This document shows positions 1,264 through 46,416 of a stretch of 64,000 nt of DNA, piece by piece (positions within the stretch are counted from its first letter, which is position 1; the number at the start of each line of letters is the position of its first letter). The stretch covers positions 248,001 to 312,000 of IMG/VR virus record IMGVR_UViG_3300017917_002374; one strand, 5' to 3'. Both the position numbers and the translations under genes were made by a program. The notes beneath the pieces were generated by a model that did not search any database, was not told the origin of the DNA, and saw nothing but the letters and a program-made list of their open reading frames with translations.

Positions 1264-4200
1264 ATGGCAAGAAAATCAGTTAAAAATTATATTTTTACAC
1301 CAGGCGCAGCAAATTCTGGAACAGTAACAATCCCTGATCCGTACAAACTTGGTGACATTCTAATGATCACAAACGTCACACGTAACACTGTGATTTACAA
1401 TTTTGGTGATCCTACTAGAGGGGGCAGCGTTGCGTATACTAACAATACCAACGGCACTCTTACCAGTCCTGCAGGCACAGCTCTGAGTGCTGGTAAAAAC
1501 ATCTTTAGTAATCTAAACAATGGATTTACCACAATTACCTTGGCATTTGACACCAGCACACATAATGCTGCTGATGTATTGCAAATCTTTGTTGAAAGCG
1601 AAGAACTAAAAGTTCGTCCATATGATTTTGGTGTTGACGCTGTGGAGCGTATGAAAATTGCTGCACCACAATCCTTGATTGATGCAGACTTTGAATATGG
1701 TATGCAGCCAACCAAGTGGGTGAGTTTTGCATCCATGAATGACATGCCTTGTACTTACGAACTGCCTGGTAGTGATATATCACTAGGTGGAGGTCTTGGC
1801 AGCTATGCTACATTTATTACTGGAGGCATTAACACACCAAGTACTTTTATCTCCGGCACCGCCCAAACAAACACAATATTTGTAAACCAAGGCTATGATG
1901 GCCCTGGTGGTACTCTTACACAAAATGGTCCAAGAAGTATTCTCAACGGCTACTACATGATTGTGGCACAAGGGCAAGCTGGGCAACCAAACTGTGCAGC
2001 AGGCACTACTCATATCACACACGACTTACCGGTCACTGTTAAAAATGGTGGTATGTTCCAGCGCACCTTCACTGTGGCAAACACAGCTGGATGGAGCCCA
2101 GGTGACATCGCTTGCGTGGTTGAAATGCCAGGTGAAGGTGCTGATGCAGCCGGTATAGGAGCAAAAGTAGTTGGCACAGTGGCCACTACCGCAGTAACAG
2201 CCGGAATAACAACACTAGCAGCCAATGCAGGCGTGCTCACATCCAATGCAATTGTATTGGTTGAAACAACACAGTTTGGTGTATGGGAAGCTATGGCTGT
2301 TGTGGGCGGTACGACCTCCACTGCAACTGTAGTACGTAACATATGGGGCACCAATAGTGCCAATGCTGCTATTCCAGTTGGATCAAAGATTCGTATTATC
2401 GCTGGTACTAGCACTTATGCTAATGCCAACGTGGAAACCATGCGCATTGACAGTGTGGATTCCTACAATCAGTTCACAGTAACACGTTCATGGTTCAATG
2501 TCAACGCCAGCCCAACATTTGGTGCCAACAGTATTGTGTTTAAAGTTAATCACACAGCGAACTCTGCTGCTGTTATGGATGCAGGTAATATTGAAATTGT
2601 TCGTGGAACCACAGTGAACCCAGTTCAGTTAACTGGACAAGTAATTGAACGAGGCAGACTTGGTACAAGACCATTGAGCGCAGCAGGTCCTGGTAGTCTA
2701 GTGGTCCTGCTCACAGGTGCATTTGTGGCAGGAAATACTTCTTCACAATCGGTGGTTGCTTATGTACCTAACCATGAAATTGGCCTAGTTTCAAACTCCA
2801 ACATAGCAAACTGCTATGTAAGTACTTTGAACTTTAGTCAGGCTGTGACAGTGAGTAATATTGAAGGTGTTTATTTCAATACCATTAATGACAGAAACTA
2901 CGTAAGATATTATCCAAAAGTGCAGTTGAATCAGCTGCCTGGTCATCAGTTGAATCAAAACGATCAGCAGGCTGTGATTCGTCGTGGTGGTATCTATACT
3001 GGTGCTAATATTGTGGTAGCCAACGTTACATCCAACGTGGGTTCTCCAAGTTTGATCACAGTTAACACAGTTTATTCACATGGACTAACTCCTGGTCAGG
3101 CTGTGCAAGTGATTCTAGGAACTGGTCCGCAGAGCGCAGGACAGTTTGCTAACATCTATGAAGGTGGAACTGGTCAATTTGTTATTACCAGCACTCCTAC
3201 TCCTAAGAGTTTTACTTATGTAGGCAAACCAAACTTAATCATTCCTACGCTACAGACCATTAACTCAGGCACACCAGTTGTGGGCTCTGAAATATATGCT
3301 AACGTTACCATGTTCCCAACAGGTCTGGTAAAACATCGTGCATTTGATGGCGGTAACAACATTGGTACAAACACCCCAGCACACGGTTACGAGATGACTC
3401 GTCAAACCAAGAAATACTTCCGCTACCAGTCTGGCAAAGGCACAATGTTTACCTCTGGTACACAGTTCATGCCAACTTTCCAATTAGCAAATGTGATATC
3501 AACAGGTACCACTATTGGTAGCACAATCACGATCACAACAGAAAACGAACATGGTTTGCAAATTGGTGCAAACGTAGTGCTGTTTGGAATAAATTCCTCA
3601 GGCTACAATGCTTTCTATCGTGTGGCAACAATCACCAATGTTAACCAATTCACAGTACTGGCTACAAATGTGTTGGCTTCGGCAAATCCTAACTTCAGTA
3701 GAACAAGATCGCAGGCTACGGATTACCAAGGAGTTAATTATCCACGTTTGACCATTGTAAACTGGCATGGTAGCAAAGTGCGTTCTGGTATATTTGATGA
3801 CAGTAACGGTGTGTTCTATGAATATGATGGACAAACATTCTATGCAGTAAAACGCAGTAGCACCAATGATATTGCAGGCCGTGCTAGTATAGCAGTAGGT
3901 AGCAATCTCATGATTGGTGATAAAGACTGCCGCTGGATTGATCAACTGGCATCAGGTGATCAAATTATTATCAAAGGTATGACTCATACAGTTACTGACA
4001 TTATTACACAAAATCAACTGTATGTGACACCTGTGTATCGTGGAGTCTTCAATGCCTTTGACACACGTATCTGCAGAATCAGCGAAGAACGTACTCCGCA
4101 GCATGAATTCAATCTAGATCGCATGGACGGAACAGGTCCTAGTGGCTATGTAATGGATCTCAAGAAAATGCAGATGATTGGTATTCAGTACACCTGGTAT

Positions 4201-7200
4201 GGTGCTGGCTTTGTTGATTACATGATGAGAGCTATTGATGGTCGTATGATTATGGCGCATCGTAGCAAAGGTAACAACATCAATGACGAAGCCTACATGC
4301 GTACTGGTAATTTGCCAGCACGTTATCAAGCAGTCAATAAAGGCGCTCGTAGCTGGACCAGCAAGGCAGTCACACCAGATGCAACAGAAATTCAGTTGTA
4401 TGATGTAAGCGAATTCCCAACAGCAAATGCCACATATCCTGTGACTGTTCAAATTGACAACGAACTGATTAGTTATACAGGAGTATGGCAAGCGAACGGC
4501 AACATCACAGGTATCACTCGTGGTGCTACTCTAAACAGTTATATTCTAGGCGAACAACGCAGCCTATGGAAAGGCAGCAATGCTGGAGTGGCATGGAGTC
4601 CTCGTGGTATGCCAAGCAATGCACCTTGGGCAGCACAAGCATTTAACCCACGTACAGGTACCTGGGTAGCGGTTGCAGGATACAGCACAGGCAGTCAAGC
4701 CACTGCATACAGCAAGGACGGACATAACTGGATCGCTGGCGGCAACCTGCCAGTAAGCAGCAACTGGTTCAATGTTGCCTACGGTCAGTTGAATGGTGTA
4801 GACACATTTGTGGCTATTTCCAATACCAACAGCACAGTGAGTGCATATTCACAAGATGACGGCTTGACCTGGACTTCGTTAACACTGCCTACCACTGCAC
4901 AGTGGTCAGGTCTAGCACATGGATTTGATCAAAACAATGTACCAGTGTTTGTGGCTATTTCAGGATTTTCCGGGGTCACAGGAACCACAAGTCAAGCAAC
5001 TGCATGGCTAAAGTCAATTGGTGCAGGATGGCAATCAGGTGGTAGCTTATCAACTGCTTTACAGTGGACATCAGTGGCATTTGGTAAAACCACAGCTAAT
5101 TTGAACGTTACTACCAACAATGTGAGTGCTAGAACCAACTACTTCTGTGCCGTGGGAAGTACAGCTACATTTTCTACTGGTACCACCACATTTAACTATA
5201 GTACAGATGGCGGTGTAAGTTGGAATCCAGGTATATTGGCTTCAACTGCCGCCTGGACAGATATTGCTTTTGGTAACAATACCTGGATTGCAATCGCAGG
5301 TGGTCTGGGCGGCACAGCAGGCAGTGTGGCAAACTATGTTCACGGAAATCCTGCGTTAGCGACCTGGGCATCAACCACATTGCCGGCCACACAAGGATGG
5401 CGTAGTATCATCTGGGGCGAAATTTATGGTATGAACCAATCTGGTGTACCAAACGTTGGTCAGGCAGGTCAGTGGATGGTGGTAAGCGACACAGCTTCAA
5501 CCACAACATTTGCTTATATGACCAACCCGCATTTGCTTGGCCCAGGTGTTGCACCAACATGGTTGAGCGGCACTCTAAACACAGCAGGCAGTTATACCAG
5601 CATCTGCTGGGGTAAAGGCATGTTCACAGCACTAGCAAGTGCTCAGTGGCAAGTGCCAATCAGCACATTTGGTAATACATTTGCAACCAGCGAATTCACC
5701 AGTGCAGGTAACTGGAGAGGACTGGCACAAGGCGATGGTAACGTGGTAGCAGTTGGCTTTGGTCAAACTGTGGCACAGGCTAGCTACAATGGTGGTCGCA
5801 CCTGGCAAGCAGCAGGTACCATGGCCAGTAGCCAAAACTGGATAGCAGTTGCATACGCACCAGACATGGGCTTTGGACAAAGAGGTCGTTTTGTTGCAGT
5901 AAGCAACACCAGCGGTACTACTGTTCAGTGGCAAGATGCTGTACAGTTAGGGGCTAGCTGGAACACAACAACCACAGGTGTTGCAAGTTTATCATATTCA
6001 GATATTTGTGCAGTAAACAGAACCTTTATTGCAGTGGCTACAGGATCGCAAACCAGTATATTCTCTGCTAACGGTGCACTAGGCTTCAGTCAGATAAATC
6101 TGCCAAGCAGCAGTAACTGGAGCGGAGTTGCAGGCGGGTTGTTCCCAATCTTCCAAGGCAACACAGGCAACGTGTGGATGGTAGCAGCAGTAAGCAGCAC
6201 CAGCGGAACAATTGCTGCTTACAGTAATGTACGTTCTGCAATTCAAGGCCTAAGCACTTTACCAGACAGTGGTAACCAAGGACAGAATGTTGTAAGTTTG
6301 TGGGGTAGTGCAACACTACCAGCCACAGGCACATGGACCTGTATTGGATACGGGTACAACAGTTACAACAACACCGGAAGATTTATCGCTCTGGCTGCTA
6401 GCAGTACCAGCTCAGCAATCAGTGTTGATGGTGGACGCACTTGGACAGCAGGCGGCGCACTGCCAAGCAGCAGTTTGTGGCAGCGTGTGGCGTATGGTTC
6501 TAACGGTATTTGGGTAGCGATTGCCAACGATAGAAGCACAGTGGCAGCTTACAGTTTGAATGAGGGTGCAAGCTGGATAGCCAGCACATTACCAACTGCA
6601 TGTAACTGGACCAATGTGGTTTATCAAGATCGTCATCATCACTTTGTGGCAATTTCAGGTGATGCTACCAACGCTAGTGCAAACGTTTCTTTAAGTCGTC
6701 CAACAGCAGGTGTTGGTATGGAACACACAGCCAACACAGGTGTTAAGGTAGTAAGTGTAACAGCCAGCCCAGACTTGAATCACTGGGGTAGTGCAGTTAT
6801 CATGGACGGCGGCTTCACAGTTGACCGTACATACACATTCACCTACAACGTAACCAACTATCAAGTGGCTGCGGTAGCTGGTGTACCACAAACCATGTTT
6901 ATGATGAGACTGGCACCAACAATCAGTAACTCCTTAACAGGTGAACTGGGTGGTAAAGAACTGATCAACCGTGCGCAGGTTCTGTTACAGAGCATGTACA
7001 TCAACGTTGGTGCATCCGCTGCACGTTTCTTGGTACAGGGCGTTCTGAACCCAACCAACGTGATCAGTGCTAACTGGAGACCGTTGAATGCAACTTCAAC
7101 GTTCTTACAACCTAGCTTTACACAGTTTGTGGCTAACGCATTAGCAGCATTACCAACTGCTGGTGTACGTCAAATAATCTTTGGTGCAAACACCACTGCA

Positions 7201-14821: not shown

Positions 14822-16036
14822 ATGGCTACCAAAGCTGTTGCAAAAAAAGCAAATGCACCTGTTGCAAAAAAAGCAAGTGTGCCCGCTGCAAAAAAGAGCA
14901 GCGTCCGCCGCAAGCATTTACCGGACGAAAAGTACACCGGCAGCGAGCCGCAGTGGGATACAGAACTAGCACTCAAAATGACAGATGAGGAGTTTGATCA
15001 TCATCTGCGACGCAGTTTTTATTTTTACAACTATCATTATGCAGTTAAAGATCTCAAGCCCGAATTTGTTAAATGGCTGCAAGAACAAAAACATTTTGAA
15101 ATCAGCAAAGCAGATCTCAGCAAGATCATAAAAAGTCGTTGGGTGCCCATGACAGCTTGTAGTCTGGTCATGGCCCATGGCATGGGCATGCCACTGCGCG
15201 GTCGCACTCTTGAATATCTCAAAAACAGTGTACAGGAAGTGTGCCTGAAGTACGATTACTATAAAGAAGGTGACGACGAGCAGCCTGAGGTTGTAGTGCC
15301 CACAGCACCGTCCAAAGTGCCTACTATTCAAGATCGTTTGAACGAACGCACTAGCGAACTGTTAGGCGAGCTTGAAGGACACTATGATGAAGTATGCGAG
15401 GGTAAAACCACGTTTGATCATTACAAGTTTTTGGTTTCCAACAATGTGGTACAAGGGCAGTTGATCAAATACGAAACCTTGTACATGACAAGAAAGGTTG
15501 AACTGGATGCTGCCTACAATGGAGCAGATGCTGATCTAGTGGAAGCCTACAAACACTATAAAGCAGCTGATTGGAAGCGAATTTTTGCCTGGATAGACGG
15601 TCTGCTTACTGCAATTGAACAGTACCGTGGAGTTAAAAAAGCCAGTAAAAAAGCCAGAGTTAAGAAAGCTCCTAGCAAAGAAAAGCTGGTGAGCAAACTC
15701 AAGTATTGTAAAGATTTTCCTCAACTGAAAGTGGTAAGTATCAACCCTGCAGAAATAGTTGGAGCACAAGAGCTTTGGGTGTACAACACCAAGACTCGCA
15801 AGCTGGGCAAATACATAGCCAGCAACAGCGATGGCTTTGCTGTTAAAGGTACCACAATTGAAAACTTTACAGACAAGAGTGTGAGCAAGACTCTGCGCAA
15901 GCCTGAGCAACAACTGTTGGAATTTACCAAAAGTACCAAGGTACAACTGCGTAAATTTTTAGAAAGCATCAAAGCCACAGAAACCTTGCTTAACGGACGT
16001 ATTAACACTGACACTGTGCTACTGCGAGTACTGTAA
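14822..16036 (+). CDS. Early hypothetical protein (404 aa) with Lys/Ala-rich N-terminal tail
   Basis: Long ORF with strong promoter and RBS; AKK repeats at the N-terminus; function not recognised. Confidence 0.8.
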   Translation: MATKAVAKKANAPVAKKASVPAAKKSSVRRKHLPDEKYTGSEPQWDTELALKMTDEEFDHHLRRSFYFYNYHYAVKDLKPEFVKWLQEQKHFEISKADLSKIIKSRWVPMTACSLVMAHGMGMPLRGRTLEYLKNSVQEVCLKYDYYKEGDDEQPEVVVPTAPSKVPTIQDRLNERTSELLGELEGHYDEVCEGKTTFDHYKFLVSNNVVQGQLIKYETLYMTRKVELDAAYNGADADLVEAYKHYKAADWKRIFAWIDGLLTAIEQYRGVKKASKKARVKKAPSKEKLVSKLKYCKDFPQLKVVSINPAEIVGAQELWVYNTKTRKLGKYIASNSDGFAVKGTTIENFTDKSVSKTLRKPEQQLLEFTKSTKVQLRKFLESIKATETLLNGRINTDTVLLRVL

Positions 16037-39900: not shown

Positions 39901-39978
<78 letters not shown>

Positions 39979-40023
39979 GATTTCTTAATAAGTTATTAAC
40001 TTATTAAATATGTAACAAGATTT

Positions 40024-40108
40024 GCGACTGTGGTGAAACAGGTATACACAGCAGACTTAAAATCTGCCGCTGCAAGGCGTGCCGGTTCGATTCCGGCCAG
40101 TCGCACCA
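40024..40108 (+). tRNA. tRNA-Leu(TAA)
   Basis: GCGACTG/CAGTCGC-A-CCA; GCAGA-CT TAA AA-TCTGC; long variable arm. Confidence 0.93.
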
Positions 40109-40114
40109 AGATTT

Positions 40115-40191
40115 CTGACCATAGCTCAGTTGGATAGAGCAACAGCCTTCTAAGCTGTGGGTCGGGGGTTCGAATCCCTCTGGTCAGGCCA
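40115..40191 (+). tRNA. tRNA-Arg(TCT)
   Basis: CTGACCA/TGGTCAG-G-CCA; ACAGC-CT TCT AA-GCTGT. Confidence 0.93.
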
Positions 40192-40267
40192 ACAGATAAA
40201 TAAACTTATGAACAAGCTCTACACTACTGCACGAATACGTAACTATCACACTCAGTGATGGCGTCTT

Positions 40268-40357
40268 CCCACGGTAGCTCAAGGAGAGCAGGAGGCCTTA
40301 TAAGCCTTTCGTCCAGATAAGACCCAGGATGCGGTTCGATTCCGCACCGTGGGACCA
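40268..40357 (+). tRNA. Atypical tRNA with TAT anticodon (nominal Ile) and long variable arm
   Basis: CCCACGG/CCGTGGG-A-CCA; D arm GCTC-AAGGA-GAGC; GAGGC-CT TAT AA-GCCTT; ~21-nt extra arm; T arm TGCGG-TTCGATT-CCGCA. Confidence 0.8.
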
Positions 40358-40363
40358 ATTCAT

Positions 40364-40390
40364 AAAAAAAGCCCCTTTCGGGGCTTTTTG
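40364..40390. terminator. Bidirectional intrinsic terminator
   Basis: AAAAAAAGCCCC-TTTC-GGGGCTTTTT between the convergent tRNA cluster and autotransporter gene. Confidence 0.9.
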
Positions 40391-40398
40391 TTTGGCGC

Positions 40399-42729
40399 TT
40401 AGAATCCTATTCTAAGCATCACACTGCCTGAGGTGCTTTGAATATCTTGACTGTGCAAATGCACAGCACCTAGAACAACAGACACCTTTTCAGAAAGTTG
40501 CTTGCCCACACCAACACGAGACACAGTGAAGTTGGTTGAAGTTTGTGCTACTTCTCCATAAACATTCATGGTACCAAATCTTCGGTCGTAACGTAAACCA
40601 TACTCGTGACTACGTGTGTTTTGATCCACTGCTGCATAGTTCATAGCAGTGATTGCACTACCAGATTCAGCAACTGCATCTCTGCGATTGTTCTCATGTC
40701 TAGCACCCACAAAAGGTCTAAAGCCCACTAGGTCTGGAGTGTACAGTCTAGCACTGAGCCAATAGTCGTTGCCGTTGGTTCTGCTGCTGTTTGAGTAGCC
40801 CAATGCTGGCAGGCTATGACCGGCTGTGAACACATTGTTGGCATAACCCAACTGTGAACTAACAATCCAGTTTCTAGCCACCCAGGTTGAGTTCAACGCA
40901 AAAATATCCTTGGTCAAACTGCCAGTGGCATCATTGCCGCCCATGTTACTATCAAAGCGACTCAAAGATAAACCTACCACTAGGTTTTCACGCACCAGTT
41001 TGTCTAATCCAAATCCATAACGTGAACTCATGATCAGATAGTTATCAAAACTGTAGTCTGCAGTTTTCTCACCAAACGCATAGAAAGAAACAGTTCTAGC
41101 TGAATCTAAATTGCCTTTGAAACTGAGATCTCCATTGATTATAGAATGTCTATTTAACAAGTTATCAGAACTGAGTAGATTGGCCAAACTGTTTGTTTGC
41201 GACAACACAGCATACTGATCAATTCTTGTGTAATAGCTTTGATCTTCACTGGTAGTAGAAACTGTGTTAAAAGTACTGGTAGTAGTGACCACTTGATTGC
41301 TGGTACTGGTAGTTGTTACCGGAGTACCATTGGTAGTGGTAGTTGTACCATCACTGTATGTGGTAACAGTTGTCGGAGTGGTTGTGGTTGTGGTTGTTAC
41401 AGGTGTGGTCTGAGTTATAACTCTGGTCACAGGAGTTGTGGTAACCACTGTGGTATTACGATTGATTTCAAGAGTTTTTTCAGTTTGTGCACCTCTACTG
41501 TCTGTGACAGTGGTCACACTGGTTGGTGTACCTGCTGTGTCTACAGTTGTACTGGTTGTGGTACCATAACTCACTGAAGTTGACACAATGTTTGCCCCGG
41601 GTGCAGTGCTGACCACAGTAGGAGTCATACTAGATACTGAACCTGGTGTACCAGGGTTGGCAATAGTGCCAGAGCCTGTTGCTACACTGGTTGTGGTGTT
41701 GTTACTGTCATAGTAGTAGGTAACTTCACCAATTTGCACACTGTCACAGGCCAGAGTGCCTAGTGCTGCTTGACAGGCTGCTACTGAACCATACTGATCA
41801 ATGGCCTTGATGCTTGGAAATGTGATAAAGTAATACACATAAGCGTTGGTATTGTTGATAGTGATCATGCTGGTTTGGGTATAACGACCACTAACGTTTT
41901 CCAATGTGGTACTTTGGTTGGCAGTGATTTCTGTCCAAGTCACACCGTCGTTTGATCCATACAGTGTAAACTTGGTAGGGTCACGTGGTACAAAGTCGTT
42001 GGCTGTGGTAAATTTAATACCGTCAATGACCTTGCCAGCATTTAGTGTGATAGTAAAACCAGCATTGGCACGATCAAAATTTAGATACTTGCTGCCACTG
42101 GTTCCATCCACTGCCTGCCCGGCACCTTCGCCTGCTGGACTGTTGTTGCTGGTTGGTGTGATATTGGCAATCATGCTTCCAGTAATTGCTGTGGGATTTG
42201 GTGTGCTGCTTCCTCCGCCGCCGCTGCTGGCTGTTTGTCCTGCTCCTAATGGAGTGGTGCTGGCCCAGGTGTATGAGCTGGCATCAGAACTGGACACACT
42301 GGTATCCATGTTGGTGAAACTGCCACTGGATCCGTAAGCATAGCCTGCACTGGTAGTGATCACTGTACCAAAGAATCCTGATCCAATGTAGAACAGAGCA
42401 TCTGGCCCAATTGCTTGTAGTGTTCCGGTGTTGTGAACCACTTGTGCAAGAGTACCATTTGCGTTGTACAATCCTAGACCGTATGTGCCTGGATTGGTGG
42501 TTGAGTTGAAAAATGCAAAATACTGTCCACTGCTGACCGTAGGATGTTGAAAATTCATATCGTATGGGGCAATGAAATTACTAGCATTCAGGGTGGTGCC
42601 AGACCAGTAATATTGAACGTCAAAAATTTGGTTAGTGCTGAAATGTCCGTCTGTGATATCTGCTTTAGCTGGAAGAATGGATAATAGAAAAACAGCAAGA
42701 GTCACAGCGACTCTGCTGAAGAATTTCAT
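40399..42729 (-). CDS. Autotransporter-like outer-membrane protein (signal peptide, discoidin/F5-8-like domain, Thr-rich stalk, beta-barrel)
   Basis: MKFFSRVAVTLAVFLLSILPAKA signal; AVDGTSGSKYLNF...FTTAND...RDP..F.LYGSNDG..WT domain; Thr-rich linker; ~250-aa amphipathic beta-strand C-terminus ending LRIGF; AGGAG RBS. Confidence 0.8.
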   Translation of the reverse strand: MKFFSRVAVTLAVFLLSILPAKADITDGHFSTNQIFDVQYYWSGTTLNASNFIAPYDMNFQHPTVSSGQYFAFFNSTTNPGTYGLGLYNANGTLAQVVHNTGTLQAIGPDALFYIGSGFFGTVITTSAGYAYGSSGSFTNMDTSVSSSDASSYTWASTTPLGAGQTASSGGGGSSTPNPTAITGSMIANITPTSNNSPAGEGAGQAVDGTSGSKYLNFDRANAGFTITLNAGKVIDGIKFTTANDFVPRDPTKFTLYGSNDGVTWTEITANQSTTLENVSGRYTQTSMITINNTNAYVYYFITFPSIKAIDQYGSVAACQAALGTLACDSVQIGEVTYYYDSNNTTTSVATGSGTIANPGTPGSVSSMTPTVVSTAPGANIVSTSVSYGTTTSTTVDTAGTPTSVTTVTDSRGAQTEKTLEINRNTTVVTTTPVTRVITQTTPVTTTTTTTPTTVTTYSDGTTTTTNGTPVTTTSTSNQVVTTTSTFNTVSTTSEDQSYYTRIDQYAVLSQTNSLANLLSSDNLLNRHSIINGDLSFKGNLDSARTVSFYAFGEKTADYSFDNYLIMSSRYGFGLDKLVRENLVVGLSLSRFDSNMGGNDATGSLTKDIFALNSTWVARNWIVSSQLGYANNVFTAGHSLPALGYSNSSRTNGNDYWLSARLYTPDLVGFRPFVGARHENNRRDAVAESGSAITAMNYAAVDQNTRSHEYGLRYDRRFGTMNVYGEVAQTSTNFTVSRVGVGKQLSEKVSVVLGAVHLHSQDIQSTSGSVMLRIGF
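41250..41700 (-). repeat. Thr/Ser/Pro-rich low-complexity stalk
   Basis: TTPVTTTTTTTPTTVTTYSDGTTTTTNGTPVTTT-type sequence; boundaries approximate. Confidence 0.8.
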
Positions 42730-42875
42730 TTTGTAGAGCTCCTTTAAAAAATTAAGAACGGTAGTTGAAAAAGCAGAAGTAGATTGAATTGTTGTTCTTT
42801 TATATCTACAAGGATATTTAACCCAATAAAGTGTGTTATAATCTAGTGTTACAATAGCCAGGATAAGTACACTTT

Positions 42876-43301
42876 ATGGAACTTTCTGAATACGATCCCA
42901 TGCGTCATCACAGCATTGCCTATCCTATGGAAGTGGGTGCGCCTAAATTTGACTTGGTTCCTGTGACCGAGCAAAAAGATCTCATGATAAATGCTGCTAG
43001 AATGCATGCACAGCAGGAGTACGATCGTATCATGGAAGTGGTGCGTGTGTTGCAAAAACAAGCAGAAGACATTAAAAAACGCTTGGATCTGACCGATCAA
43101 GTGCATGCTGCTGCGTATCAAATGCAACTGTATCCTGGGCAAAAATATTGGTTATTTCATGATTCAAAAAAAGGCGGTACAGGACTAACCATAACTGGGC
43201 CCAAGGATTGGAGTACAGGAGTACCCGATCACTATGAATACATAACACAGATACAATGGTTAGGTGATTATACTTGGAGAGAAGTTACAGAAAATGAGTA
43301 A
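42876..43301 (+). CDS. DUF2452-like protein
   Basis: Coiled segment followed by PGQKYWLF...LTITGP.DW pattern resembling DUF2452. Confidence 0.55.
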   Translation: MELSEYDPMRHHSIAYPMEVGAPKFDLVPVTEQKDLMINAARMHAQQEYDRIMEVVRVLQKQAEDIKKRLDLTDQVHAAAYQMQLYPGQKYWLFHDSKKGGTGLTITGPKDWSTGVPDHYEYITQIQWLGDYTWREVTENE

Positions 43302-43942: not shown

Positions 43943-44035
43943 GGAAACGTGGCTGAGTGGCCGAAGGCAGCGGTTTGCTAAACCGTCGATCAGCTTAAAA
44001 CTGGTCCGTGGGTTCGAATCCCACCGTTTCCGCCA
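43943..44035 (+). tRNA. tRNA-Ser(GCT)
   Basis: GGAAACG/CGTTTCC-G-CCA; GCGGT-TT GCT AA-ACCGT; long variable arm. Confidence 0.93.
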
Positions 44036-44041
44036 AACAAT

Positions 44042-44115
44042 TCCGGAGTAGTATAATGGCAGTGCGACGGTCTCCAAAACCGTTAGTGGGGGTTCGATTC
44101 CCTCCTCCGGAGCCA
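44042..44115 (+). tRNA. tRNA-Trp(CCA)
   Basis: TCCGGAG/CTCCGGA-G-CCA; ACGGT-CT CCA AA-ACCGT. Confidence 0.9.
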
Positions 44116-44121
44116 GATCAA

Positions 44122-44523
44122 ATGAAAAAAATATTTGTAAACGGTACATTTGATATTGTACATCGCGGGCATGTTGAAATGCTTAACTATGCTCGTGGCC
44201 TAGGCGATTATCTATTGGTTGCAATTGACACAGACACTAGAGTACAGCAGCTCAAAGGCCCAACTCGTCCTGTTAACATGCTTGTAGATCGCATGTTTCT
44301 GTTAAACAATCTCAAGGCAGTGGATCGTGTGGTTAGTTTTGATTCTGACCAAGAGTTATCTAGCATAATTAAACAGTATGCACCGGACGTTATGGTCAAG
44401 GGCAGCGATTATATAGGACGAGACATCATAGGTGCAGAGCATTGTGCAGCTATTGAATTTTATCAACTGGTAAATGGATACTCAACAACTCAAAAAATAC
44501 AAGATATTGTTAATCGGCGATAA
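44122..44523 (+). CDS. Heptose-1-phosphate nucleotidyltransferase (RfaE/HldE domain II, HldC-like)
   Basis: NGTFDIVHRGH (HxGH), LKGPTRP, VKGSDY, GYSTT; true start at 44122, after tRNA-Trp. Confidence 0.88.
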   Translation: MKKIFVNGTFDIVHRGHVEMLNYARGLGDYLLVAIDTDTRVQQLKGPTRPVNMLVDRMFLLNNLKAVDRVVSFDSDQELSSIIKQYAPDVMVKGSDYIGRDIIGAEHCAAIEFYQLVNGYSTTQKIQDIVNRR

Positions 44524-45244
44524 TGGTGTTGATCAGTACCAATATGGTACTGTGAATCGTATCAGTCCCGAAGCGCCTGTGCCTGTGCTAGATCTTAGCC
44601 ACACAGTAACCAAGCCGGGCATGGCTGCAAATGTTAGAGAAAATCTCCTAGCTCTGGGTTGTGATGTAATCTTTGAACATGGTCTTAAAACCTGTATCAA
44701 AACTCGTGTGATTGATCTGCGCAGCAAACAACAGTTGATACGCATAGATCAAGATCAAGAATCCAAACCAGTAAAAATAAATCATGCAACTCTGGACCGT
44801 TATGACGCCATTGTGATCAGCGACTATGCCAAAGGATCAGTTGATTATGCTACAGTGCAGAACATACGCTATCATTACACAGGCCCTATTTTTGTGGATA
44901 CCAAGAAAACAGACATGGCCAAGTTCAGCGGTTGTATAATCAAGATCAATCAGTTAGAATACGATAGACTGGTTACTCGGCCGGACTCGCTTACAGACAT
45001 GATCGTCACGCAAGGCGATCGTGGTGCAGAATGGAATGGCCGTCTAATACCAGCAGTGCCGGTGGAAGTGGCAGATGTGTGCGGTGCAGGAGATACATTT
45101 TTAGCAGCTCTTGCATATGGATATCTTGAACACAAGGACATGGAGCTAGCCATCAAATTTGCCTTGCGGTCCAGTTCTGTAACTGTACAGCATGTGGGAG
45201 TGTATGCACCCACACTAGAAGAAATTAATCAGGAGAAATCATGA
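44474..45244 (+). CDS. Heptose-7-phosphate kinase (RfaE/HldE domain I, HldA-like, PfkB family)
   Basis: YGTVNRISPEAPVPV, GMAANV..NL.ALG, KTRV, ISDYAKG, DVCGAGDTF. Confidence 0.9.
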   Translation: MDTQQLKKYKILLIGDNGVDQYQYGTVNRISPEAPVPVLDLSHTVTKPGMAANVRENLLALGCDVIFEHGLKTCIKTRVIDLRSKQQLIRIDQDQESKPVKINHATLDRYDAIVISDYAKGSVDYATVQNIRYHYTGPIFVDTKKTDMAKFSGCIIKINQLEYDRLVTRPDSLTDMIVTQGDRGAEWNGRLIPAVPVEVADVCGAGDTFLAALAYGYLEHKDMELAIKFALRSSSVTVQHVGVYAPTLEEINQEKS

Positions 45245-45402
45245 GTGTGAAAAAAGACAGTAAGCGTGATCCGATGAAACACAAGAGTGGCAAACCACGT
45301 TTAGGCCCACTGAATCTAGAGCAGTTAAACAAACTGATGGAAACAGCCCGTCCTAAAGAACGTGCTAAAATTCAGAATCGTATCCGGGCAATTTCACAAT
45401 GA
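45241..45402 (+). CDS. Small basic protein (53 aa, below the ORF-track cutoff)
   Basis: AGGAG RBS; ATGA overlaps at both ends; MSVKKDSKRDPMKHKSGKPRLGPLNLEQLNKLMETARPKERAKIQNRIRAISQ. Confidence 0.7.
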   Translation: MSVKKDSKRDPMKHKSGKPRLGPLNLEQLNKLMETARPKERAKIQNRIRAISQ

Positions 45403-45761
45403 CCAGACTATCAGGCAGAGTAGAGAAAGGCTGGGGCTCTGAAGAAATTTGGGCCACTAACGACAAATACTGTGGCAAGCTCATGCACTTTAATCAAGGT
45501 GCAAAATTCAGCATGCACTTTCATGCTGTGAAAGAAGAAACTTGGTATGTGCTAAGTGGAAAGTTTGTTGTTCGCTGGATTACCACACAAGATGCTTCTG
45601 TAAAAGAAAGAGAACTAGATGCTGGTGACACCTGGCATAATCAACCATTAGTACCACATCAGCTGATTTGCATAGAAGCAGGCACAATCATAGAAGTCAG
45701 CACTCCGGACAGTGTGGAAGACAACTACAGAGTATTACCAGGCGACAGTCAGATCAGCTAG
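45399..45761 (+). CDS. Cupin sugar isomerase (mannose-6-phosphate isomerase C-terminal/lyxose isomerase-like)
   Basis: VEKGWG.E.IW, SMHFHAVKEETWYVLSG, PH.L, EVSTP. Confidence 0.8.
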   Translation: MTRLSGRVEKGWGSEEIWATNDKYCGKLMHFNQGAKFSMHFHAVKEETWYVLSGKFVVRWITTQDASVKERELDAGDTWHNQPLVPHQLICIEAGTIIEVSTPDSVEDNYRVLPGDSQIS

Positions 45762-46416
45762 CACTATAACGAACATTGCGGTCATCAAGATAACGTTTTT
45801 TTACTTGCTCGTATTCTGGATTTGACGGCAACAGTTCGTTTTCATAAAAAACGTCCTTGGCCCAGTGCGATTTGATATACTCAATTGTATCGGGATTCTG
45901 ACATAGAACACCCAACCCGCCAGAATGCAGAAATCTAATTTTTGGTTGAGGTATGCTAAAAAACACCTGTTCAACTTCAGGAAAGCTCGTAACATCGTGC
46001 ATGAGTAGCACGGTGTTTTCGTGAAAAAATCTACTCCAATTCACAATATCGTGTGTGACTGCTTGTGCTGTGTGTAATCCGTCTAGATGCAAAAGATCAA
46101 TCGGAGAAAACCATAAGGCACATGCAGCGTCAAAGGTGTTTTTCACTAGTTGTACATTATCAAACTTATGCTTGATTTTAAAATCAAGTACTCTTTGATA
46201 TAAGCCTTGATCACGTGCGCCTGCATGAATATCACCTTCAAAAGTATCAATTCCAAACACTTGCCCAGGATTGTTTTCGGCTAGACAGAAACAACTGTAC
46301 CCATTGTCTACTCCTAGTTCAACAGTGATTTTTGGCTGTAAATATTGCACAAGCCATTGTGCAAATCCGCGGTGCCCTTTCCAGGCGCTGTCTAATTCAT
46401 CTATGTTGTGGTTCAT
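45754..46416 (-). CDS. Class I SAM methyltransferase (Methyltransf_24-like)
   Basis: VELGVDNGYS, GIDTFEGD, IDLLHLDGLHT, LMHD. Confidence 0.85.
   Translation of the reverse strand: MNHNIDELDSAWKGHRGFAQWLVQYLQPKITVELGVDNGYSCFCLAENNPGQVFGIDTFEGDIHAGARDQGLYQRVLDFKIKHKFDNVQLVKNTFDAACALWFSPIDLLHLDGLHTAQAVTHDIVNWSRFFHENTVLLMHDVTSFPEVEQVFFSIPQPKIRFLHSGGLGVLCQNPDTIEYIKSHWAKDVFYENELLPSNPEYEQVKKRYLDDRNVRYSAS

Follow-up and report, generated by a model that had tools for sequence, protein, structure and literature searches.

A predicted type Va autotransporter with a putative lectin head behind a late-type promoter of a freshwater jumbo phage

Introduction

What an autotransporter-like lectin is doing in an apparently virulent phage is the question raised by a gene on the minus strand, at positions 40399-42729, of a 64,000-nucleotide stretch of DNA (hereafter the window) that covers positions 248,001 to 312,000 of the IMG/VR virus record IMGVR_UViG_3300017917_002374. 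The window belongs to a single 354,959-bp record with direct terminal repeats that CheckV rates as 100% complete, and the open reading frame (ORF), which is intact in independent metagenomes, encodes a protein of 776 residues (P0001). A preliminary description of this DNA had read P0001 as an autotransporter-like lectin displayed by the infected cell late in infection, and had named structure prediction and profile searches for PF03797 and PF00754 as checks. Drawing on these checks and on a comparison with relatives of the gene, we arrive at a best explanation that we hold to be probable, with reservations: the late type Va autotransporter of a virulent jumbo phage displays a glycan-binding head for adhesion in trans.

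The answer bears on a wider puzzle, the purpose of curli operons in phages. The idea of "sibling capture" has been raised for the curli genes of pelagimyophages (PMC7029224), in which fibres would serve host capture, whereas the description of Methylophilales phage Melnitz proposes that phage CsgGF acts as a pore or in lysis timing (PMC9004378). Neither of the two papers found the fibre subunit, in that no CsgA/CsgB-like substrate was reported in those phages (PMC7029224, PMC9004378). Relatives of the window phage supply this missing piece, namely curlin-repeat proteins, one of them fused to the lectin head, and they carry the same head on an autotransporter. Throughout the text coordinates are those of the window unless another locus (e.g., L003, L014) or the whole genome is named.

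A classical autotransporter by sequence and model

By every defining feature that sequence and model allow to be tested, P0001 is confirmed as a predicted classical (type Va) autotransporter. At its N-terminus lies a Sec-type signal peptide (residues 1-23; 42661-42729, minus strand), assigned by rule from its n, h and c regions and an A-x-A cleavage site: K2 and R6 are followed by a 13-residue hydrophobic core (mean Kyte-Doolittle value 2.86) and then by A-K-A before D24, where cleavage is predicted. The junction, A-x-A followed by D-I-T-D-G, is conserved in almost all full-length homologs.

At the opposite end of the protein, a 12-strand beta-barrel (residues 546-776; 40402-41094, minus strand) closes with the residues V-M-L-R-I-G-F, and a terminal Phe is found in 115 of 128 family members. 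PF03797 matches residues 490-776, taken alone, with 43.3 bits (cut-off 26), and the same match is recovered in a six-frame search of the genome (43 bits). A Pfam scan of whole P0001 misses the family, probably through the composition bias of the Thr-rich middle of the protein, and a single-sequence PDB search with the barrel returned nothing meaningful. The AlphaFold model of residues 487-776, which was built on 48 relatives (pLDDT 88, pTM 0.82), consists of one helix (residues 19-33 of the modelled piece) and then 12 long strands. This helix (approximately residues 505-519) falls in a linker region ahead of the barrel (41095-41214, minus strand) that also finds its match in the NalP translocator. 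The best PDB matches of the barrel model are all type Va proteins, namely EstA, the NalP translocator, AaaA, EspP, Hbp, AIDA-I and BrkA, with TM scores of 0.72-0.79 to the NalP translocator and 0.70 to EstA. Thus, both the Sec signal and the C-terminal barrel ending in Phe that the preliminary description had recognised are upheld, the former by its n, h and c regions, its A-x-A site and the junction kept across the family (a rule-based assignment), the latter by PF03797, by a model with 12 strands and a preceding helix, and by the L-R-I-G-F end.

One barrel type within the family departs from this ending. In homologs P0014, P0019, P0071-P0078 and P0090, and in L022, the protein ends ...R-W-V-F-N or ...R-W-Q-F-N, an unusual variant of the beta-signal in which Phe is second to last.

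A putative lectin head on a stalk of fixed length

The passenger model (residues 1-350, pLDDT 81.5) contains two beta-rich domains, and in it the head of P0001 consists of two beta-sandwiches, an N-terminal tip domain (residues 24-175; 42205-42660, minus strand; pLDDT about 90) and a CBM32/discoidin module (residues 176-345; 41695-42204, minus strand). The tip domain has been assigned to no family: it has no sequence or profile match in the PDB or Pfam, and a feature search of the ESM Atlas gave no usable match for it. The second domain is better placed. PF00754 (F5/8 type C) scores 34.8 bits on whole P0001 and 39.5 bits on the domain alone, in both cases over the gathering cut-off of 28.2, and the fold modelled for residues 175-346 matches CBM32/discoidin modules for galactose, GalNAc and kindred sugars with Z scores of 13-16. 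The passenger had been described beforehand as discoidin-like and carbohydrate-binding, and its discoidin nature is borne out by both the profile and the fold. We regard the head as a putative sugar-binding lectin, a shared fold being no demonstration of function. The only two Cys residues of P0001 (319 and 328) both lie within the discoidin domain, and their closeness, at eight residues apart, is a hint that the passenger may be translocatable.

Between the head and the linker extends a Thr-rich stalk (residues 346-505; 41215-41694, minus strand; 38% Thr, 12% Ser), and here the earlier picture needs amending. The mucin-like stalk that had been proposed is indeed rich in Thr, but it is not a freely evolving linker: its length stays within 159-164 residues in 55 homologs, with almost no indels, and only the discoidin domain is better conserved (column conservation 0.81 in the discoidin domain, 0.80 in the stalk, 0.71 in the tip domain and 0.63 in the barrel). 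A search with the stalk gave one match only (3pdd), which is weak and probably compositional.

Autotransporters of the AIDA-I type are O-heptosylated, and a stalk of this composition could likewise be glycosylated. Next to the autotransporter gene, at 44056-45761 (plus strand), are split HldE/RfaE-like genes (one cytidylyltransferase-like, the other for a PfkB kinase) and a cupin gene, and at a distance, at 325.9 kb of the genome (L009, 898-1881), there is an ORF that resembles GT9 heptosyltransferases. Heptosylation of the stalk is unsupported, given that this ORF matches a generic GT9 structure weakly and TibC-type enzymes not at all.

A virus-specific family in freshwater jumbo phages

The genome encodes a Gp23-family capsid protein (337 bits), a T4-type terminase, gp32, UvsX, UvsY and a contractile tail. 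By terminase, its nearest cultured relatives are Pseudomonas phage PA5oct (54%) and Sinorhizobium phage Phosso (51%), with Serratia phage BF and the Erwinia SNUABM phages at 46%. Judged by its genes, the phage is a T4-core freshwater jumbo myovirus; with a genome of 355 kb and a terminase nearest to that of PA5oct, it is not a member of the Tevenvirinae. No tyrosine integrase or serine recombinase (resolvase) was found in the complete 355-kb genome, and the phage is apparently virulent, although the absence of these two recombinase families does not prove a lytic lifestyle. Of the "apparently lytic T4-like phage" in the preliminary description, the T4 core and the lack of an integrase or resolvase are retained, and the type is revised to a 355-kb jumbo myovirus whose terminase is nearest to that of PA5oct.

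Relatives of P0001 recovered by a word search fill more than 1,200 protein clusters, many with precomputed PF03797 matches, in length classes of about 578, 670, 717, 776 and 1,100-1,250 residues. All homolog contexts that were inspected look like phage, among them contigs of 353 kb and 367 kb with blocks in common with this genome. P0001 itself has no match in PHROGs or NCBIfam. Among 50,697 deposited phage genomes there is one match only, in the barrel region, to Synechococcus phage DSL-LC03, and homologs of the head are absent from the same genomes at E ≤ 1e-5. The statement that autotransporters are unusual cargo for virulent myophages therefore holds for the deposited genomes, with their one distant match, but not for this freshwater lineage, with its more than 1,200 clusters.

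The passenger was followed beyond the phages with an alignment scan that rests on two conserved peptide patterns, so that very distant cellular relatives could escape it. In 185,579 prokaryote species genomes the scan found two loci, both matching the discoidin part only (35-37% identity), and in IMG/VR it found at least 112, on contigs of up to 383 kb. One of the two prokaryote matches, in a Rubrivivax metagenome-assembled genome, lies in a very large ORF (over 4,100 amino acids) with which P0001 shares the discoidin module alone, and a bacterial origin of the head is on this account unsupported. The nearest ESM Atlas cluster has 291 members, all of them viral, with PF00754, and Curlin_rpt in 16%. 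We take the head family, as far as sequence comparison reaches, to be virus-specific.

Within these viruses the autotransporter gene occupies at least four genomic positions: inside a curli operon (L003 and others), in an HSP20-ClpS-Rv2179c block without curli genes (L008, L042), between genes for an IF-1-like protein and superoxide dismutase (L005), and within a tRNA island in antisense orientation (the window, L020 and L014, whose synteny is identical to that of the window).

As autotransporters are mostly found in bacteria and the deposited phage genomes contain a single distant match, one could suspect a bacterial gene that entered the record by misassembly or mis-binning. We consider this excluded. 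Single contigs from independent studies span the gene together with its phage flanks, and one of another study, which covers the gene in full, differs by 27 substitutions, of which those listed are mainly at third codon positions. Moreover, L014 has the same synteny, homologs reside on viral contigs of 330-383 kb, the gene carries the phage's own late motif (see below), its GC content is unremarkable, and the head is virtually absent from the 185,579 prokaryote genomes.

DNA nearly identical to that of the phage is present in freshwater metagenomes (ponds, lakes, rivers and others) of 11 studies. One study contributes several runs with the label "soil metagenome", which contain 31-62% of the sampled words of the locus; all other runs with this DNA are freshwater, and the soil-labelled runs could represent wet soil, mislabelling or a wider habitat. 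A phage of ponds, lakes and rivers might use the head for attachment to polysaccharide that does not belong to its host, such as lake snow or the sheaths of algae or cyanobacteria, and thereby bring the lysing cell to spots crowded with hosts or keep it in the water column. The nearest structures to the head, CBM32 modules of glycoside hydrolases that bind environmental as well as host glycans, would suit such a role. Nothing in the data separates it from host-to-host tethering, and we rate it as rather improbable.

One head on interchangeable anchors

The preliminary description had no curli context for this gene, an omission that matters, because the same head is normally the product of a curli-operon gene and bears a curlin tail. 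The comparison of tails covers 80 fetched viral loci of the at least 112 in IMG/VR; tails were classed by the C-terminal residue, and the non-identical ones were checked against Pfam and the PDB. About 15 of the 80 loci combine the head with a barrel, and about 65 combine it with a C-terminal tail that ends Cys-x-x-x-G-Cys...Q-G-Q. We identify this tail as a curlin domain: Curlin_rpt matches 26 of the 42 non-identical ones (best E 8e-14), and a profile of the tails matches the curlin-repeat protein of PDB entry 8c50 (E 5.5e-22) and CsgA (8enq, E 1.2e-3).

In nearly all curlin-tailed loci the head is encoded by the fifth gene of the series CsgF-CsgG-curlin-FecR-head-CHASE2-cyclase, often with a peptidase S11 gene in addition. 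Seven barrel-tailed genes (L017, L018, L019, L021, L022, L023 and L025) sit in exactly that operon slot. By contrast with these relatives, the genome of the window phage contains no CsgG, CsgF, curlin-repeat or cyclase homolog and no FecR-like gene, and P0001 is without Curlin_rpt; the phage appears to have lost the curli genes and to keep the autotransporter form alone.

How often the anchor has changed was estimated on a tree of the heads (136 rows, FastTree). The tail type changes only two or three times on it (three changes are required, versus 36 for shuffled labels), and the barrel-tailed proteins group in two clades of 87 and 7 rows, both well supported and both embedded among curlin-tailed proteins. 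Because the tree is unrooted, with no outgroup, and the protein set is enriched for barrel forms, we claim at least two tail swaps but not their direction. At a threshold of 55% identity the barrels themselves divide into 16 types, which change 24 times along the tree of the heads. In one homolog the head shares 91% identity with that of the window but the barrel only 43%, and in others, with heads 77% identical, barrel similarity is undetectable. These comparisons indicate that the head is the payload under selection and that its anchor can be exchanged.

This turnover also bears on whether the barrel itself could be the functional part, its insertion late in infection weakening or perforating the outer membrane and so aiding lysis. 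The late promoter class of the gene and the lysis-timing proposal made for Melnitz (PMC9004378) would agree with such a role, but the barrel is the least conserved part of the protein, its 16 types have been swapped and it has even been replaced by a curlin tail, while head and stalk are conserved. Furthermore, in the model the linker helix precedes the pore, and in solved autotransporters such a helix plugs it. A lytic role of the barrel would on these grounds be very improbable.

More speculatively, freshwater jumbo phages may share a late "lectin display" in which one conserved head reaches the surface either through a curlin tail and the phage's own CsgGF (type VIII) or through a barrel (type V). 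The type V form would allow a phage to discard its curli genes, the barrel being re-matched again and again, perhaps to the BAM complexes of different hosts. We put this generalisation forward tentatively, as a possibility with somewhat more doubt than support.

Two further features of the curli operons were observed. A CHASE2-sensor class III nucleotide cyclase gene and a FecR-like gene flank the head gene (L003, 10416-12458, and most of L017-L093), and the conservation of these two members suggests signal-dependent control of the phage curli operon. The head gene of one viral contig, L050, is broken into two ORFs of 296 and 361 amino acids (3962-4849 and the one next to it), which may be due to a frameshift, decay or a sequencing error.

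A late-class promoter and a self-contained cassette

TAAATA, the core of a T4-late-type promoter, lies 85 nt before the ATG of the autotransporter gene (42820-42815, minus strand). The preliminary description had placed this motif one base away and had called it the only recognisable upstream signal; its presence is beyond chance, but other signals exist. A few bases after TAAATA follows a conserved GTAGA (42805-42809, minus strand), which recurs in the window, L003, L005, L008 and L014, is replaced by TAGTA in L006 and is possibly the transcription start region. The putative 5' untranslated leader (42730-42814, minus strand) includes a strong AAGGAG ribosome-binding site (42744-42739) with a spacer of 9 nt to the ATG. 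Directly 3' of the stop codon, between it and a tRNA-Ile gene, folding predicts a ten-pair terminator hairpin (40364-40389, minus strand; -15.9 kcal/mol, z -3.46) of the bidirectional type, with A and T tracts on both sides; pairing of the T-run into the stem hid it from a consensus scanner. A sigma-70 scanner found no promoter upstream of the gene.

Genome-wide, TAAATA is the top enriched upstream hexamer, present before 58 of 166 genes with an upstream gap versus 3.6 expected, and its position peaks 10-30 nt ahead of start codons. In the window it precedes virion structural, head-tail adaptor, tail sheath, tail tube and fibre genes, as well as the gene for a protein of 1,381 residues that matches structural and tail proteins. 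No enrichment was seen for the full T4 octamer TATAAATA (12 on the plus strand versus about 18 expected), and the core in this phage is therefore taken as NTAAATA. The genome also encodes a homolog of the T4 late sigma factor gp55 (phmmer E 1.5e-8). Among relatives, TAAATA is kept upstream of the autotransporter homologs of L003, L005, L006, L008 and L014 despite their differing genome positions. Across 38 non-identical upstream regions of head genes it is found in the sense orientation in 11, where shuffles expect 4.7, and in the antisense orientation in 1, and all 11 belong to closer relatives. We infer late timing of the autotransporter gene and regard this as well supported. The late display of an adhesin, as first proposed, is supported in part, by the late-class promoter, the gp55-like factor and the lectin-type autotransporter; tethering and receptor masking, the roles suggested for it, are tentative.

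The gene is antisense to its neighbours and lies between two tRNA clusters, in a genome in which 323 of about 380 called ORFs are on the plus strand. With its own promoter and terminator, an independent orientation and a variable position, it qualifies on sequence as a putative self-contained cassette of the moron type.

Late timing would also fit a lectin that protects the progeny by masking receptors. Such a head would bind the host's own glycan, in cis or on debris, and would either block superinfecting phages or stop new virions from being wasted on fragments of lysed cells. Phage T5 has a lipoprotein, Llp, that blocks FhuA and so spares virions. A head of the glycan-binding type could cover a polysaccharide receptor, and the sugar-nucleotide and methyltransferase genes in the neighbourhood suggest remodelling of surface glycans. 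Late expression is, however, too late for classical superinfection exclusion, and both the conserved 160-residue stalk and the mounting on a curli fibre push the head off the cell's own surface, whereas a mask in cis needs the opposite. Masking is accordingly, in our estimate, an unlikely but serious candidate.

Proposed role

We return to adhesion. Glycan-mediated binding in trans is most likely the role of the head, and it fits because the long stalk, or the fibre in the sister forms, would project the head outward. Late in infection the Sec system of the host would export P0001, the BAM complex of the host would insert the barrel in the outer membrane, and the nearly Cys-free passenger would thread out through it. 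The stalk would then hold the lectin head away from the outer membrane, and through the head the infected cell would adhere to host cells nearby or to particles rich in polysaccharide. Through such tethering the progeny may be released beside new hosts ("sibling capture").

Several points weigh against this proposal. CBM32 folds bind many sugars, and the ligand of the head is suggested only by likeness of fold. The TAAATA of the autotransporter gene is 85 nt from the ATG, compared with 10-30 nt for most late genes, and the motif is missing upstream of many curlin-tailed homologs. The host should be Gram-negative, and compatibility with its BAM complex is assumed. No RNA run with the locus was found, the lone run marked "RNA?" being probably DNA and containing fragments only, nor was any evidence of localisation found. 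Finally, no clumping of infected cells was seen with Melnitz (PMC9004378), a phage in which no homolog of P0001 is detectable at E ≤ 1e-5.

If the proposal is correct, its consequences extend beyond this locus. Taken together, the curlin-repeat proteins, the fusion of one of them to the head, the same head on an autotransporter and a phage with no curli genes point to the surface display of a glycan-binding head, rather than to a pore, as the selected function. Should the head tether neighbouring hosts, "sibling capture" would gain direct support from genetics, and the purpose of phage curli operons would be settled. Type V and type VIII secretion would be interchangeable for one cargo, and the swapping of barrels bears on the matching of outer-membrane proteins to the BAM complex and on the engineering of surface display. 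Because the gene is a simple and self-contained unit, its expression and assay need not wait for the host to be cultured.

Neighbouring genes and other features

The tRNA island around the gene comprises a Met, Leu, Arg and Ile cluster (39901-40357, plus strand) and, at its other edge, tRNA-Ser and tRNA-Trp (43943-44115, plus strand), both in the same arrangement in L014. Two of these tRNAs are long, tRNA-Ile(TAT) at 90 nt (40268-40357) and tRNA-Ser(GCT) at 93 nt (43943-44035), and the tRNA-Ile gene ends 7 nt from the bidirectional terminator, which it apparently shares with the autotransporter gene. The divergent neighbour of the autotransporter promoter (42876-43301, plus strand) encodes a DUF2452 protein (44 bits) and is kept beside the gene in L014.

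Another antisense gene (45754-46416, minus strand) encodes a 220-residue methyltransferase (PF13578) and has TATAAATA 4 nt before its start. This is too close for the octamer to serve as a promoter for that start, which may therefore be miscalled. A second class of upstream sequence, (G)GTTGAC(C)-N17-20-TAnnnT, is found ahead of 36 genes, most of them within the initial 160 kb of the genome (in the window, for example, at 14822 and 17640); these GTTGAC...TATAAT elements look like host sigma-70 early promoters.

In the wider jumbo-phage group, genes for ClpX, ClpS, HSP20, ribosomal protein S21, an IF-1-like protein, Fe superoxide dismutase, UvdE and peptidase S11 occur in conserved blocks, which lie at 13-23 kb and 75 kb of this genome (outside the window) and in L003, L005 and L008, the last of which also has HSP70. 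In L006, an 83-kb phage contig with a short form of the autotransporter, ARAGORN calls a tRNA with a CTA anticodon (3758-3834; labelled Pyl), a possible amber suppressor.

Comparison with known systems

P0001 shares with NalP, EstA, EspP, Hbp, AIDA-I and BrkA the Sec signal, the helix followed by a 12-strand barrel and the terminal aromatic residue, and with type Va autotransporters in general a PF03797 match over the cut-off and a passenger almost free of Cys. Identity between its barrel and the solved type Va barrels is just 9-16%. The part of its passenger that was modelled is two beta-sandwich domains, carried on a Thr-rich stalk, whereas the typical type Va passenger is a beta-helix; a beta-helical passenger with an autochaperone segment is typical of the class but not universal, as EstA lacks it. 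Unlike these examples, P0001 is predicted to be the product of a virulent-phage gene, stands behind a phage late promoter and belongs to a virus-specific family.

The discoidin module has its counterparts in the CBM32 modules of Clostridium perfringens GH89, GH31, GH84 and NanJ and in a module of the Micromonospora sialidase. These have the fold in common with P0001 (Z 13-15; rmsd 2.2-2.6 Å over 132-142 residues) and likewise match PF00754, but identity is only 14-21% and the module of P0001 is not joined to an enzyme.

Autotransporter genes of phages have already been annotated automatically in databases, so that the kind is known and its presence in phages is on record. The protein of Synechococcus phage DSL-LC03 (WJZ47857.1, "autotransporter beta-barrel protein") resembles P0001 in the barrel only (21% identity, E 3e-7). 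Like the window phage, DSL-LC03 is a T4-core aquatic myovirus; unlike P0001, its protein has 549 residues, and the gene for it has endolysin genes as neighbours in a cyanophage genome of 173 kb. Three UniProt entries from uncultured Caudovirales phages (A0A6J5R861, A0A6J5L9T3 and A0A6J5KUW0, "Autotransporter beta-domain containing protein") match the barrel of P0001 in BFVD with a TMq of 0.64-0.67, at just 16-20% identity. A search of the literature found no paper on phage autotransporters and no analysis of those UniProt entries. The lectin head, its alternative mounting by type V or type VIII secretion, the turnover of the barrels and the curli-less state appear to be undescribed.

Antigen 43 (flu) offers a likeness as a phage-associated autotransporter adhesin that causes cell aggregation. 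Unlike P0001, however, it belongs to a defective temperate element, the cryptic prophage CP4-44 of E. coli K-12, it is the bacterium that expresses it, and its passenger is a beta-helix that associates with itself.

A parallel in genome context lies in the curli operons of pelagimyophages and of Methylophilales phage Melnitz (PMC7029224, PMC9004378), which, like the present group, are T4-core aquatic myoviruses that carry parts of an outer-membrane secretion system. In relatives of the window phage CsgF and CsgG adjoin the head gene. Unlike the pelagimyophage and Melnitz operons, those described here include curlin-repeat proteins and a fusion of the lectin with curlin, and, unlike all of these curli-bearing phages, the window phage appears to have dropped curli in favour of the autotransporter.

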